Shown here one piece after another: positions 16,623-63,985 of a stretch of 64,000 nucleotides of DNA (position 1 is the stretch's first letter; every line of letters starts with the position of its first letter). The stretch lies in assembly GCA_964106645.2 (NCBI GenBank), contig OZ067042.1; one strand, given 5' to 3'. The notes under the pieces are model-generated. The model was given only the letters and a program-made list of their open reading frames with translations, was not told where the DNA came from and did no database searches. This DNA is from Podarcis pityusensis. Taxonomy: Eukaryota. The position numbers and the translations under genes were made by a program.

Positions 16623-17078
16623 AAGGTAAAGGGACCCCTGACCATTAGGTCCAGTCGTGACCGACTCTGGGGTTGCGGCCCTCATCTTGCTTTACTGGCC
16701 GAGGGAGCCGGCGTACAACTTCCGGGTCATGTGGCCAGCATGACTAAGCTGCTTCTGGCGAACCAGAGCAGCGCACGGAAACGCCGTTTACCTTCCCGTC
16801 GGAGCGGTACCTATTTATCTACTTGCACTTTTGAGGTGCTTTCGAACTGCTAGGTTGGCAGGAGCTGGGACAGAGCAACGGTTCGTAGAGGGCCATTAAC
16901 AATACAAGGGAACTCCTCCCCCGCTGCCTCAGGTGGGAGGTTGCCCGAGTAACTGCTCTGGGGGAGGCCAAGAAATTTCTGGGAGCTCACCCCGTCACGG
17001 GGATTCGAACCGCCGACCTTCTGATCGGCAAGTCCTAGGCTCTGTGGTTTAACCCACAACGGCACCCGTGTCCCTTTT
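16623..17078 (-). mobile_element. Sauria SINE, full length, with an internal ~99-bp insertion
   Basis: On the minus strand: tRNA-like head GGGACACGGGTG..GGTTCGAATCCC and ACCTTT tail; 12-bp TSD ATAATTAATATA at 16611-16622 and 17079-17090. Confidence 0.92.
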
Positions 17079-17780
17079 ATAATTAATATACAGTTAATTA
17101 AAAAGGCAAGTGATGGAAGATAACCCGTTCAAGATGTTCAAAGTTTGGATTGAATGTAATCAGCTAGTTCATACTGAATTCTTATTCGCAAGCCCTACAT
17201 TGCATTCCTCTAGTATTAGAGCGATAACAGATAACAGTTGTTGATATATTTGGGTCAGTGCTTAAGAATGCAAACCGTGCTTGGAATGCATTTGGAAAAG
17301 TCTTAAAGATCTTCATATGTTTAGTACTAGATACCGGTTAATGTACACGAGCATGTTGTCATTACACATGTGTCCGTTATTCTGTATGATTTAACAGTTA
17401 AGTCCTTGCCATTACTTCAGAAGGCACTCCATTATGGATATATTGCTTTCCTGTTGCCTGAATTCCATCCACTCCTTATTCTGACTAATGAGTGAATTGC
17501 TGTGTGAAATTGACTAGAGTAGAATGTTAAAAATAATGTAGCTTCTGAAGACTCTTCAGATTGAATTTAAAAGACAGGAGGCTGTGTGTGGGAAGCTGAA
17601 AAGAGACCCCAGAATTAAGAGAGTTAGGAGAAAGGTGCCTGCTAGCTGTGAAAAAAGTCAAGATCTGATTTAAGAATGAATTGAGTCAGGAATAGTTTTC
17701 AATAAATAAAGGCAACGACATCATGGAGGAGAAGCCAAGGAGAAACAAGCTATTGCGAGAATTAAGATAGGGCCTACATA

Positions 17781-36120: not shown

Positions 36121-36373
36121 AGTGCCTCATTTACAGATGGATTAAGAACCTCTGGGCCTAATGCATGTACATATGCCTCCTTTCATTCGGATAATGCGTT
36201 AGCCACAAACATTGCCAGCTTGCCCACTTTCACAGAGAGCAAGCCTTTATTTTTGGAGCCCAGAATATCCCATACAAGGAGCTTGGCCGCGGACGCAAAT
36301 AGTGGGACATCAGAAGAAACTGGGAAGAAAGTGATACAGCAGCCTGGATCACCAGTACTCCAGTCATTCCAAG
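36121..36373 (+). CDS. FARP2: FARP2 exon 13, short form (linker)
   Basis: SASFTDGLRT...SPVLQSFQ+G; strong acceptor ctcctcag|; phase-1 donor AAG|gtgttg fits exon 14 but is weak, and stronger phase-1 donors lie downstream, so the 3' boundary is uncertain. Confidence 0.75.
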
Positions 36374-37344
36374 GTGTTGGGCTTTGTAAAGTTGCAGAAA
36401 ACTGCACCCCCACTTGTACTGATGTTGAGAGTAGCTGTGGTTTAGGTGTAGCAGTAGAAGGTAGGATTACTTGTAAAAATGACAATTACGTGGATGACTT
36501 TACCACAGGTATGGCCATTGCTGCTAAACAGCATCTGCCTCAAGGTAGGGGTGCCTCACTTGTAAAACTGGTTAGCTCCCAGCTTCAGGTTTCAGAAGAG
36601 TTCATTGATGATGATCCAGCAGAAATGTCCTTTTTTGCTGGAGGTTCTGAAGCATTTTCCTATTTGTATGATGGTTTAGATTTGCAGGAGTCAGATCTAA
36701 CTAATTGTCTCTCAGAGTCACCTGCTTTAACTAAAGAAATTCTGCAAAGAAATATGATGTCTTCTCAGTCAAGTCCTGATAGGTGCTCCATAGAAGCAGT
36801 AGATATGAACATGGACCATGAGTTTGAATTTGAAGGAGAGAGTGATTTTAATGGGAATGAACAGCCTTCAGATACCTCGGAATTATTTGAAGTTAAAGCT
36901 CAGGCAAGCAGAATGCAAAGTCTTCTGAGTCCTTCTGAAACTAGTTCATTAATTAACAACCGTTCTGAAAGTAGTTCTCTCAACAATTTGACACTAAATG
37001 GTATGCCATTTTTGCACACTTATAGCTCTGCTAATCACTCTGAAGCTAGTTCAATGGTGAATTTTCCAGCATATTCAGTTCGCTCTGAGTCAAGTTCAGC
37101 TTTTCAGTTCACTGACATTATTGACCAGTTGGAACAGCTGAGCTATCCACCTACCACTACAGAAGACTCTAGTAGCACTGATGACTCATGGGATTCAGAA
37201 ACTGCAGCCCCATTAGACATAAACCTCTTTTTCAACAACCCCTTTGCTGAGGCTACTAGAGAGAATTTCACTCTTGATTTTCAGAATAATCTTAAGAATC
37301 TCACCCAGGAAGATAAAACAGAAGACACACACACAAGCCATTAA
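36374..37344 (+). CDS. FARP2: Putative FARP2 exon 13 read-through / alternative terminal coding segment (323-aa acidic Ser-rich tail)
   Basis: Exon 13 frame continues stop-free to TAA 37342-37344 in AT-rich DNA; protein-like composition with internal motif repeats; no TE hallmarks. Confidence 0.8.
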
Positions 37345-57620: not shown

Positions 57621-57641
57621 CTGATAGTCCTGGATCCTCCG
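57621..57641 (+). CDS. FARP2: Putative FARP2 21-nt microexon (LIVLDPP)
   Basis: U-rich tract + ttttcag|CTGATAGTCCTGGATCCTCCG|gtgagt; phase 0-0 like its host intron; no stop. Confidence 0.72.
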
Positions 57642-58433: not shown

Positions 58434-58552
58434 CACTCGTCTGGAAATGGGGAAGTGGATGGAAGATCTAAATATGGCAATTGAAATGGCCAAGAAATTC
58501 ACTGAGAAATCAGAGATGTTTCTAGAAAACTCAGTGTGCAATCGTTCTAACA
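58434..58552 (+). CDS. FARP2: FARP2 exon 23 (PH1 C-terminal helix)
   Basis: TRLEMGKWMEDLNMAIEMAKKFTEKSEMFLENSVCNRSN+1; tttcag| and |gtgagt. Confidence 0.95.
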
Positions 58553-59220
58553 GTGAGTAGCTTTCATGTCACTTGTGATTAGTGATTCTTGGTTAGTTGT
58601 GTGCTCTTCAGGCTTCTGAGATGGAAAATGGTATAGATTACGCAGCCTTCAGTCTTTTTCACTAAGTAACATTCCATACCCTCTCCGATGCTCCAGATAT
58701 TTCAGGCTTGGCAAATAAGAACTTCCAGCTGTTCAAGCAATAATAATGAAGTTTATAGTGTGTAATCTTTCCTTACCACCCTCTTACACAGGAAAGTATT
58801 CATTCTTTTAAACCACAGTTCACTTACCAATCTGTGGAAGTCATTGAAGTAATATCCTGTGTACTCCTGAATGTCTCCTTATCTATGGATCCGCCCCACC
58901 ACTGGCCACTGAAACACACGGTGGCATTCCTCAGGTGGAAATTATATATTTCCTAGGAATCCTTCTAGGAAGCTTCTGAGCAAACTTTTCAATATTTTCC
59001 CTATATAACAGAATGTGACTTTTTCCTATGCAATAACTTTGATGTGTCCTAACCTTCAAGCTATCGATTATGAAGGCCATGGATATCAGAAGGAGAGTAA
59101 CCCATGCATGCCAATTCCTTTTGTGAGGGGAAGATGCTATTATACGTCAGCAATCCTTGCTGCTATCACTACCCCTGTGCCCTCAGCCTGTTAAATGTTT
59201 GCTCCCTTCTCCCCCCTCAG

Positions 59221-59384
59221 GATCCTCAGATGAGGTATCTGTAGAACAGGAGTCCGAAGAGGACATACATTCTTCTCGTAGCTCCCTGGACAGGCAGAGC
59301 CACCACCGTGCCAATACTACTATGCATGTATGCTGGTACCGCAACACCAGTGTCTCCATGACAGATCACAGTGTGGCCGTCGAG
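59221..59384 (+). CDS. FARP2: FARP2 exon 24A (canonical PH1-PH2 linker)
   Basis: (R)SSDEVSVEQESEED..HRANTTMHVCWYRNTSVSMTDHSVAVE; cctcag| and |gtaccc; phase 1-0. Confidence 0.96.
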
Positions 59385-59971
59385 GTACCCAGCAGCAGAG
59401 CACATATCACTATCACTTTCACTTACCACTCTGTCTGTCTTGGTTGCTGGTTTCTCTGCACTGTATACATGTGTGCGGTTTTAACACCCCCTTCATTTCG
59501 TTCAGTAACTTCAGTGGTCTTGTGTGAGAGAGCAAATGAATGAATAACCACAAGACGTCTGAAGATGTTCTTTGTATGTGTGACTGCATGTTTCCATCAT
59601 GTTCTCAACAAGGGTGTGCTTTGGAGAAGAAAGAAGATAAAAAGGGGGGCTTTGATATATCAACAGCTGCCATTCACACTAAAAAGCTAATGAAAGAAAT
59701 CAGCTTTGGGATTATGAAACCAAAAGTTTGTGATCTTGCCCACTGAGAACCCTGTTTTAGGTAAATTTGTTAAATCTTTCTGACTTCTCCCCAAAGCACC
59801 ATGGCCCCTTGCACTGCGGATCTTAGGACTTTTTTACTTTTTTCATACTATTTCTTTTAACAGACCTTTTCGTGTACTGCCCTTTCTTGTTCTAAATCAC
59901 CTTTTTCTTTCTTTTTCTCTTTGCCCTGCACCCTTTCTGCTCAGTTTTCTGCTCTCTTGCTGTTTCTCCAG

Positions 59972-60084
59972 AGCTTCCTCCTCGCTATTTGCTGGGCCAG
60001 ACTCAGCGGCCCAACACAATCACCCACGTTTGCTGGTACCGGAACCAGAGTCTATCCCTGTCTGATTATTTGTGTATGATTCAG
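59972..60084 (+). CDS. FARP2: Putative FARP2 exon 24B (paralogous, probably mutually exclusive with 24A)
   Basis: (K)LPPRYLLGQTQRPNTITHVCWYRNQSLSLSDYLCMIQ; long pyrimidine tract + ctccag| and CAG|gtaaag; phase 1-0 like 24A; shares NT..HVCWYRN.S.S..D. Confidence 0.88.
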
Positions 60085-60272
60085 GTAAAGCTGCTTCACT
60101 CACTCTCAGTATTGATAGGATCTATGAAGACGGTCATTTTCTACTTGTACCATCTCGTTATAGCTCTCTTAAACACTGTTCTAATGTGCAGAAACAAGGA
60201 TCTAAAATATTGGAATGAGTGGTAAGACATCCTTTAAGTCTCTTGCAGAAATCAGCCAAATTAATCCCTTTA

Positions 60273-61183
60273 CAGTGGTGCCTCGCAAGACGAAATTAAT
60301 TGGTTCCGCAAGTTTTTTCTTCTTGCGAGTTTTTCGTCTTGCGAAGCACGGTTTCCCATAGGAATGCATTGAAAATCAATTAATGCGTTCCTAGGGAAAC
60401 CGCTTGCCAGGCTGGCGGTGCGGAGAAGGGCTTTTCTCCCCTCCGCAAGCCTTCAGGACAGGTACGGGAACAGAGGGGAAGGCGCGCAGCGCTTTCCCTC
60501 TGTTCCCGGGGCTTGCGTGGGAGGAGGGTTTTTCCTCCGCACCGCCAACATTCAGAACAGCATTCTGAATGTTGGCGGTGGGAAGGAAAACCCTCCTCCC
60601 ACCCCAAGTCTTCAGGAAAGCCATCCGAAGCTGGGCGGCGGGAGGAGGCGTTCCTCCCCCCCCGCCCGGCATCGGAGCTTCGTTCCGATGCCGGGCGGGG
60701 GGAGGAGGCGTTCCCCCCCCCCGCCCGGCATCGGAGCTTCGTTCCGATGCCGGGCGGGGGGAGGAGGCGTTCCCCCCCCCCGCCCGGCATCGGAGCTTCG
60801 TTCCGATGCCGGGCGGGGGGAGGAGGCGTTCCACCCCCCCGCCCGGCATCGGAGCTTCGTTCCGATGCCGGGCGGGGGGAGGAGGCGTTCCACCCCCCCG
60901 CCCGGCATCGGAGCTTTGTTCCGATGCCGGGCGGGGGGAGGAGGCGTCCCCCCCCGCCCTGCATCGGAACTTCGTTCCGATGCCGGGCGGGGGGAGGAGG
61001 TCCGAGGACAGTGGGGAAGACGCGATGCGCTTCCCCGCTGTCCCGGAGATTTCCCTATGGGCTGTCGTCTTGCGAAGCAAGCCCATAGGGAAATTCGTTT
61101 TGCGAAGCGCCTCCAAAACGGAAAACCCTTTCGTCTAGCGGGTTTTCCGTCTTGCGAGGCGTTCGTCTTGCGGGGTACCACTG
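60273..61183. mobile_element. Tc1/mariner (Tigger-like) non-autonomous element, GC-rich and apparently young
   Basis: 22-bp TIR CAGTGGTGCCTCGCAAGACGAA / TTCGTCTTGCGGGGTACCACTG, TA flanks, repeated subterminal CGTCTTGCG, CpGs retained. Confidence 0.9.
60643..61000. repeat. 59-bp palindromic GC-rich minisatellite, 6 copies
   Basis: Core GCCC(G/T)GCATCGGA-N7-TCCGATGCCGGGC starts at 60664, 60723, 60782, 60841, 60900 and 60956. Confidence 0.95.
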
Positions 61184-62737
61184 TATTAAGAAGAACCCTG
61201 GATACACATTCCATTGTTTTGATGCATTTCATTTATCCTGTAGATTAGATCACAGCAAGTTAGGTTCCTTCTCCCTCCAGTGGGGCTTACTCTTCACTTT
61301 ACCAGCATGTTAACTTAAAAGTGGCATTGCTGCCATGTGCTCTGCAGGGCTTTTTACTGTGTGCTTTCCCTCAACATTTTCTGTCTTCTAGTTGTATTGT
61401 CTCCTTAACTAAGAATGCAAGCTCTGTGTGTTGCTTACTGGTTCTTAGCATGTTGTAGAGGACAAAAAACGGGTCTTAAATTCGCAGTTAACATAGCACG
61501 GACATGAATCAGTTGCATCCATAATTGTTCTACCCTTTCAGAGGAGGAAATGCAGTACGCAGAGTTATCACTGTGAAAAAGGGGTGTGTGCACAAATGGA
61601 CATTACATTAGTAGCTGGCATACCTGAGAGAAGACACCTTGATGCAGGATGCCCTTCAGAAGTTGCTAGACACCAACTCCCCTCAGCCGCAGCCACTTTG
61701 ACCAATGGTGAGGGGTGATGGGAGTTGTAGTCCAACATCATCTGGAGGGCACATTGGGTTCACCTGCCCTAGAGCCTTTTTGGTATGATCAGGAAAAGCC
61801 TGACTCAAACAACCTTTAGTGGAAACAGTGAAATATCCTATCTGGACTGAGTGGATCTGAATGGGGAGTAGGTAGCTCTCCCATAGAGCAGGAGTTCCTA
61901 AACTGCAGTCTGTGGACTACCTGTGGTCCATGAGGTTTTTGCAGGTGTTCCACAGCATGGCTGTATTAAACAGACATTCTATGGAATGCAAATTGTAATA
62001 CAATAAAATAGAATATAATAAATAAAAGCAAGAAAAATGCAATTAAAAACCATACAGCATCTAGCACGGCACAATCCAGTTACTACAAGTGGAAAAACCA
62101 GTTAAGTGGTTTTCAAGTTTTGGAGCCACTGCTACAAACTGAATAAAAAAATAATGCTGTCTCACTTCCCACCTCCTTAAAAACCTGGGGGGTCAAATGC
62201 TAAAAAAAGTAATAAATAAAAGGACTGTTGGGGCAATTGGGGTGTTTTTGCTGGTCTGCCAGTAAAATAAATATAGCATACACAATGCTTGACAAGCACT
62301 CCAGTGTTGTAGTTTCAGAGCAAAGAATCCCAAATAATTTGTTGGGGGGGGTTGTAATTTTGAATGGCTCCAAATTACACAACCATGGAGTTGGGTGGTG
62401 GCTTTATATTGCTCGGTCATTAACTTCATCACAGGAAATAGCCAATAAATGTCTGTGTTACACACCCATGCTCCAATATTGGAAAAATATGGAACTTTTC
62501 TAACTGCACTTGGCAAATTATATCACCACCATAAAAAGGTAACTTGTATACTTCTTGCACAAAATATCTAATCATACAAAAAGGCTCTGAAGCAGTCTTT
62601 CTCAAATTCAGTCATCCTCTAGAAAAAGTTATTTATTTTTTGAATCTGCAATGCAAATTTAACGGCAGGTTTTTGTTGAGCGATTGTGGAGAATGACTAC
62701 TAGTCACTTACACTATATTTTCCTCTCTTCCATGTAG

Positions 62738-62845
62738 AACCAGCTGTCAGGATACCTATTGAGGAAATTCAAAAACAGTAACGGCTGGCAGAAGCTGTGG
62801 GTTGTTTTTACAAACTTCTGTTTGTTCTTCTACAAGACGCACCAG
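62738..62845 (+). CDS. FARP2: FARP2 exon 25 (PH2)
   Basis: NQLSGYLLRKFKNSNGWQKLWVVFTNFCLFFYKTHQ; tgtag| and |gtaaga. Confidence 0.97.
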
Positions 62846-63833: not shown

Positions 63834-63985
63834 GATGATTATCCATTGGCCAGTTTACCACTTCTTGGTTACACTGTCAGCACACCCGTAGAGGCCGATG
63901 GCATTCAGAAGGATTATGTCTTCAAACTGCAGTTCAAGTCCCATGTATATTTCTTCAGGGCTGAGAGCAAGTACACCTTTGAGAG
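63834..63985 (+). CDS. FARP2: FARP2 exon 26 (PH2); final exon outside the window
   Basis: DDYPLASLPLLGYTVSTPVEADGIQKDYVFKLQFKSHVYFFRAESKYTFE(R); tttcag| and |gtaagt. Confidence 0.97.

Follow-up and report, generated by a model that had tools for sequence, protein, structure and literature searches.

The 3' part of the gene for FARP2, a FERM-DH-PH-PH RhoGEF of cell-shape signalling, lies in the 64,000-nucleotide stretch of Podarcis pityusensis DNA analysed here (hereafter the window; contig OZ067042.1), and it raises the question of whether this gene carries two alternative exons, here called A and B, for the linker between its PH1 and PH2 domains and, if so, what the exchange of one for the other changes in the protein. 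A sequence-only reading of the locus had proposed an old exon duplication that swaps this linker. The window contains no N stretches, and exons were used individually as search queries, their joining being confined to scripts that checked reading frames. The translation of exon A aligns with the linker between PH1 and PH2 in mouse FARP2 (4GZU) and human FARP1 (4H6Y) with E values of about 1e-16. Identity of exon A reaches 94% with a bird FARP2-type locus against 66% with a FARP1-like one, which establishes FARP2 orthology, and a Podarcis muralis protein (P0062) is almost identical to it, a translated intron stretch included.

Exon A (164 nt) is bounded by AG and GTACCC, and exon B, separated from it by a 560 nt intron, ends at 60084 before the donor GTAAAG. 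Their translations are homologous, with 13 of 27 residues identical (48%, E 1e-11), and 45 of 78 nucleotides agree over the shared core. Both exons are phase 1-0, as the sequence-only reading had stated, and both of the exon peptides that it quoted are found in the window. Either exon alone bridges exon 23 to exon 25 in frame, and the translation of exons 23–26 comes to 181 amino acids with A and 173 with B; the B form is therefore 8 amino acids shorter and does lack the acidic Ser-rich stretch, as had been claimed. A further in-frame AG at window positions 59229–59230, 9 nt into exon A, might allow the removal of three residues, and no reads among the listed junctions use it.

The start of exon B had been set at 59972, which would make the B form 17 amino acids shorter than the A form; this boundary had to be moved. 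Conservation of B reaches 27 nt upstream of 59972, to the AG at 59943–59944, and the nine codons between 59945 and 59972 show codon-like changes relative to sturgeon and teleost sequences. At the tandem AGAG within the exon, the first AG (59970–59971) is missing in sturgeon, which has CCG GAG there, and the second is missing in a teleost transcript. A join of exon 23 to 59972 occurs in only one gene model, that of the skink Lerista (P0074), and this site, which is not conserved and is almost never used in isoforms, was ruled out as the main B acceptor. Because of the upstream conservation, the absence of the 59970–59971 AG in sturgeon, and the junctions of annotated isoforms and of an assembled fish transcript, we define exon B as in Table 1.

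Table 1. Positions in the window of the FARP2 exons and of the motifs discussed in the text.
Feature	Position	Strand	Evidence or remark
PH1 microexon of 21 nt (LIVLDPP), regulation possibly shared with B	57621–57641	+	AG..GT flanks; conserved in bird, vole and fish
Exon 23, coding for the PH1 end, shared upstream exon, ends in phase 1	58434–58552	+	Reads across the exon 22 junction and that to 59221 in 4 RNA runs
TGCATG of RBFOX type, 5' of exon A, candidate site for neural repression (putative function)	59105–59110	+	Aligned in bird
Exon A, encoding the PH1-PH2 linker of ancestral type: an acidic, Ser-rich half and the conserved core	59221–59384	+	58552-59221 junction in 4/4 runs; 4GZU/4H6Y match; single A-like exon in mussel
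B acceptor region: branch-point-like motifs (A near 59860 and 59895), long polypyrimidine tract, main AG 59943–59944	59855–59944	+	Conserved among lizard, bird and sturgeon
Exon B, duplicate of 140 nt coding for the alternative linker, phase 1-0	59945–60084	+	Joined as 23-B-25 in L003 (fish transcript) and in some 100 annotated isoforms
Tandem AGAG inside exon B, acceptor sites used rarely or not at all	59970–59973	+	Frame kept from exon 23 by 59972 and from exon A by 59974; a few gene models only
PPRY codons, PPxY-type motif, B only	59977–59988	+	Conservation in spliced B proteins
Exon 25, start of PH2, shared downstream exon, phase 0	62738–62845	+	Frame open with A or B; covered by RNA contig
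Exon 26, rest of PH2	63834–63985	+	Open frame, AG..GT

Exon B is spliced into FARP2 in other vertebrates. The fish transcript (L003) runs from exon 23 through the 59945-type acceptor to exon 25 and skips A. In a third, full-length protein search, of which the best 120 of 1041 matches were considered and which carries no information on mammals, 102 of 115 new proteins among the top matches were B-only, nearly all with a 59945-type junction; they include zebrafish, salmonids, sturgeon, paddlefish, ducks, falcons, Pogona and Heteronotia. Thirteen models carry A and B together in frame, some of the fish RefSeq ones by way of a further upstream acceptor, and frameshifted A+B models occur in a gecko (P0044) and a finch (P0064). 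Predicted RefSeq and Ensembl FARP2 isoforms (zebrafish X3 and X7, Pogona X2, Heteronotia X2, duck X3), all of them automated models, carry exactly exon B with the 59945-type acceptor. The B isoforms of seahorse and pipefish (P0201, P0205, P0223) start about three residues later than those of other fish and keep PPRY.

Exon A is joined alone to the flanking exons in many transcript-derived proteins and in RNA of a close relative of this lizard, for which we used four runs of unspecified tissue. There the 58552-59221 junction is supported by 8, 8 and 4 reads and by one contig at depth 342. Exon B has zero depth in the four runs and receives none of 20 junction reads, so that its share lies below about 14% of transcripts (upper 95% bound, three raw-read runs). 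Of the junctions that the sequence-only reading had named for comparison, that of A was recovered in this relative and those of B were not. Since all four runs show A only, B in the close relative is rare or tissue-restricted.

Between lizard and bird, exon B shows 11 silent codon changes and 1 replacement change, and between lizard and teleost 19 silent and 7 replacement changes; by these codon counts B is under strong purifying selection. Silent-site divergence together with conservation as far as sturgeon and teleosts rules out a recent duplication or a pseudo-exon. The old duplication is borne out by the homology of the two exons, by the splicing of B in other vertebrates and by its lack of degeneration, the last two being the points on which the sequence-only reading had expected to fail if wrong. 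We conclude that A and B are real, ancient, alternatively used duplicated linker exons of FARP2.

The duplication dates from the split between ray-finned fishes and tetrapods or earlier, and several observations bear on an origin still further back. In mussel there is a single A-like exon, of identical phases, and a second copy is absent. A tree built from 28 columns separates all B exons from the mussel exon and every A exon of FARP1-like and FARP2 genes with support 97/97, the alignment being short and the FARP1-like second exon a long branch. That second exon, a strongly diverged, B-like linker sequence downstream of A in a fish FARP1-like contig (L004:1819-1946), is known from genomic sequence alone; it has a CWYR core, the same donor offset and in-frame acceptors (HMM E 3e-4), has no PPxY, and retrieved nothing related when used as a query in an atlas search. 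A FARP-like Xenopus tropicalis protein (P0016, KAE8604508.1) combines a PH1 end unlike that of FARP2 with a B-leaning linker and is possibly a third paralogue that keeps B. The mussel exon, the tree, the fish FARP1-like exon and the Xenopus linker suggest, without proving, that the duplication predates the FARP1/FARP2 split, A being ancestral and B derived. In the Chinese sturgeon assembly two identical B copies lie 989 nt apart (L002:16050-16189 and 17039-17178), either a true duplication at this place or an error of assembly.

Among mammals, a model from the marsupial Gracilinanus keeps a diverged B with PPRY. The prairie vole intron between A and exon 25 (1063 nt, without gaps) contains no recognisable B, and the weak matches to B within it (HMM E 0.23; one of four local alignments with p 0.015) were judged to be chance. 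The other rodent sequences covered FERM exons only (Myodes locus L005) or ended just past exon A (contigs L006 and L007). FARP1 and FARP2 are absent from the accessible part of the supplements to a human catalogue of mutually exclusive exons (PMC5740500) that lists FGFR2, PKM and SNAP25. On the vole genome and this absence, B was likely lost in placental mammals. Some rodent models and transcript-derived proteins (P0113, P0116, P0119) have an alternative tail and no DH-PH domains (compare window positions 36121–37344).

Joining both exons by their main acceptors creates a stop 113 nt upstream of the 25/26 junction, and skipping both creates one 64 nt upstream of it; at these distances both products fit the usual rule for nonsense-mediated decay (NMD). 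Inclusion of both by the AG before 59972 shifts the frame, as had been predicted, and inclusion of both by 59974 leaves it open. The two exons had been called probably mutually exclusive. The premature stops of the both-or-neither products agree with this, but the 13 in-frame A+B models and the open 59974 route do not, and exclusivity is probably not absolute. Steric exclusion was ruled out, the A donor lying about 475–510 nt from the B branch region in lizard and farther in bird and sturgeon where about 50 nt would be needed, as was U2/U12 incompatibility, the donors all being ordinary GT sites (GTGAGT, GTACCC, GTAAAG). With regard to docking/selector pairing in RNA, which would call for conserved complementary intronic elements, a search for intronic similarity between species returned none at E<0.05, and the lizard-bird intron alignment shows conservation of the splice signals and of one TGCATG only; both comparisons address pairing by conserved sequence. 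This TGCATG, upstream of A, is also present in vole and is absent in sturgeon.

Regulated choice combined with NMD is the best reading of the exclusion. From −60 to +55 around the B acceptor the sequence is 78% pyrimidine and holds 15 CU-rich motifs, against 2–4 at neighbouring acceptors, and across three species the count at the B acceptor is 10–15; judged by known PTBP preferences, this region would be a PTBP-type RNA silencer. The first 16 codons of B are unchanged between lizard and bird, silent sites included, whereas about a third of its other codons change (post hoc P 0.0015; P 0.09 for a fair half-split), suggesting that the 5' end of B is under RNA-level constraint. The PH1 microexon is present in 2 of 2 transcript-derived B proteins and in 0 of 16 non-mammalian A proteins (nominal P about 0.007, the samples being non-independent); 39 RefSeq B isoforms have it and 63 do not. 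By our own reading of the sequences, primers in PMC6952364 seem to flank the mouse Farp2 microexon, which is listed there among cell-type-specific novel exons. These observations give a hint of a neural bias of B.

What most sets B apart among its conserved features is the PPRY motif. P, P and R are present in all 125 spliced B proteins and Y in 124 of them, with most columns more than 95% invariant, an invariance biased upward because these proteins were collected by similarity to B and are mostly from teleosts. The segment has a pLDDT of 24–34 and is predicted to be disordered. PPxY motifs are class I WW ligands, and ligands of NEDD4-family WW domains tend toward disordered regions (PMC8509885); about 12% of human proteins contain a PPxY, which by itself gives no guarantee of binding (PMC8509885). 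With a conserved P-P-x-Y in a segment predicted to be disordered, B qualifies as a candidate WW ligand.

We compared an alignment-based AlphaFold model of the DH-PH-PH region of a public Pogona B form (pLDDT 70; a single-sequence run, at pLDDT 38, was uninformative) with the closed 4GZU structure and obtained TM scores of 0.75/0.82 and an rmsd of 4.6 Å, the linker itself having a pLDDT under 60. In the model the first half of B is disordered and the second half forms, at low confidence, a short strand and a helix that lead into PH2. This core is kept in both A and B. Small residues of A in the helix before PH2 are replaced by bulky hydrophobic ones in B, and in the flexible half the acidic Ser-rich loop of A is exchanged for a shorter Ser-Pro/PPRY segment. 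Mouse FARP2 (4GZU) and human FARP1 (4H6Y) represent the same family and region, their linker matching exon A and their fold being overall like the B-form model, but unlike the B form they contain the A-type linker only, and a structure search found no B-type linker structure. The statement in the sequence-only reading that the canonical protein has only the A type agrees with these mammalian crystal structures.

How the swap acts on the protein can be read in more than one way. We favour, as probable, the reading in which B is an early-vertebrate tandem duplicate that replaces A in a minority of FARP2 transcripts under regulation and with NMD clearing the misjoined products, and in which the exchange swaps interaction or phosphorylation sites, a WW docking site being the candidate. 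We rank above retuning of autoinhibition this swapping of motifs, and the two can coexist. That the switch should mainly retune autoinhibition, the B helix face and shorter linker altering the packing of PH2 on DH and with it GEF activity towards Rac1/Cdc42, was the idea of the sequence-only reading, and we consider it unlikely. The FARP1/2 DH-PH-PH unit is autoinhibited by PH2 and other elements, or the proteins are possibly pseudo-GEFs (PMC6041286), A and B disagree at half of the 26 core residues with each set conserved within its own class, and the change to bulky residues falls in the helix before PH2; yet the B-form model keeps the closed 4GZU arrangement, a weak objection given the linker pLDDT, and PPRY sits in the flexible half.

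Two further readings concern whether the B protein matters at all. If B were mainly a poison exon, added after A so that the frameshift sends the mRNA to decay and lowers FARP2, B-only proteins would be minor by-products. The position of the A+B stop, the frameshifted gecko and finch models and the nucleotide-level conservation of the B 5' part would fit, but the great majority of substitutions in B are silent when read in the B-only frame, and some 100 annotated isoforms of full length contain B and no A. A pure poison exon would not preserve the B-only frame from teleosts to lizards, and we regard this reading as improbable. That B is conserved yet disused in this lizard lineage seems more improbable still: the zero coverage in the close relative is what it predicts, but the sequence, splice sites and frame of B are intact and nearly identical to those of bird, and Pogona and Heteronotia have annotated B isoforms.

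Under the favoured reading, in which B swaps linker motifs, the PH1-PH2 linker exon would have been duplicated in tandem in an early vertebrate to give B, which a minority of FARP2 transcripts would take in place of A. Both-or-neither mRNAs would be removed by frame-dependent NMD, and the choice between A and B would be regulated. In most cells the CU-rich, PTBP-like silencer over its acceptor would keep B off, and B may be released together with the nearby microexon, probably in neurons. The closed DH-PH-PH fold is probably retained in both forms, since the structured core leading into PH2 is present in both exons. The most likely function, as far as the motif itself can tell, would be that the B form gains a docking site for a WW-domain protein, a NEDD4-family ligase or a scaffold, beside the autoinhibitory PH2. 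Placental mammals would then apparently have lost B. A more specific version, in which a duplication older than the FARP1/FARP2 split led to a neuron-biased FARP2 with a WW docking linker and binding there either frees the active site from PH2 or drives ubiquitination, is speculative and, as a whole, doubtful. If it were true, the WW-docking linker would be a missing route of activation or turnover for a GEF known only in its closed state, a route preserved from fish through birds but lost by placentals.

By what route FARP1 and FARP2 leave the autoinhibited state, if they are not pseudo-GEFs, is a standing question (PMC6041286) on which B bears. Because B naturally varies the linker leading into the inhibitory PH2, from teleosts to birds, constructs with A and with B offer a direct test of FARP activation. 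For semaphorin-plexin work in zebrafish and chick, a second FARP2 isoform exists in those animals and is absent in the rodent checked (vole).

Mutually exclusive exons that are homologous to each other form an established class, and exon B is already in the automated annotations of many non-mammalian vertebrates. Like FGFR2 IIIb/IIIc, PKM 9/10, SNAP25 5a/5b and SCN 5a/5b (catalogued in PMC5740500 and PMC9741552), FARP2 A and B are adjacent, homologous and ancient; as in those tandem pairs, the two exons have the same phases and similar lengths, either completes the protein, and double inclusion by the main acceptors shifts the frame. Unlike those pairs, only half of each FARP2 exon is homologous, the other half swapping kinds of disordered motif, and B is apparently lost in placentals. 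A literature search found no paper on the FARP2 exon B event, its homology to A, its tissue pattern or its motif, and the A/B switch is apparently undescribed. It adds an ancient homologous-exon switch that is missing from human-based catalogues as far as their accessible parts extend.

Downstream of exon B, window positions 60271–61185 hold a MITE-like element whose terminal inverted repeats are 24 nt long and which encloses a 59-nt GC-rich palindromic array of 6.4 copies; the ends of the element collect thousands of reads of the RNA runs from other copies.
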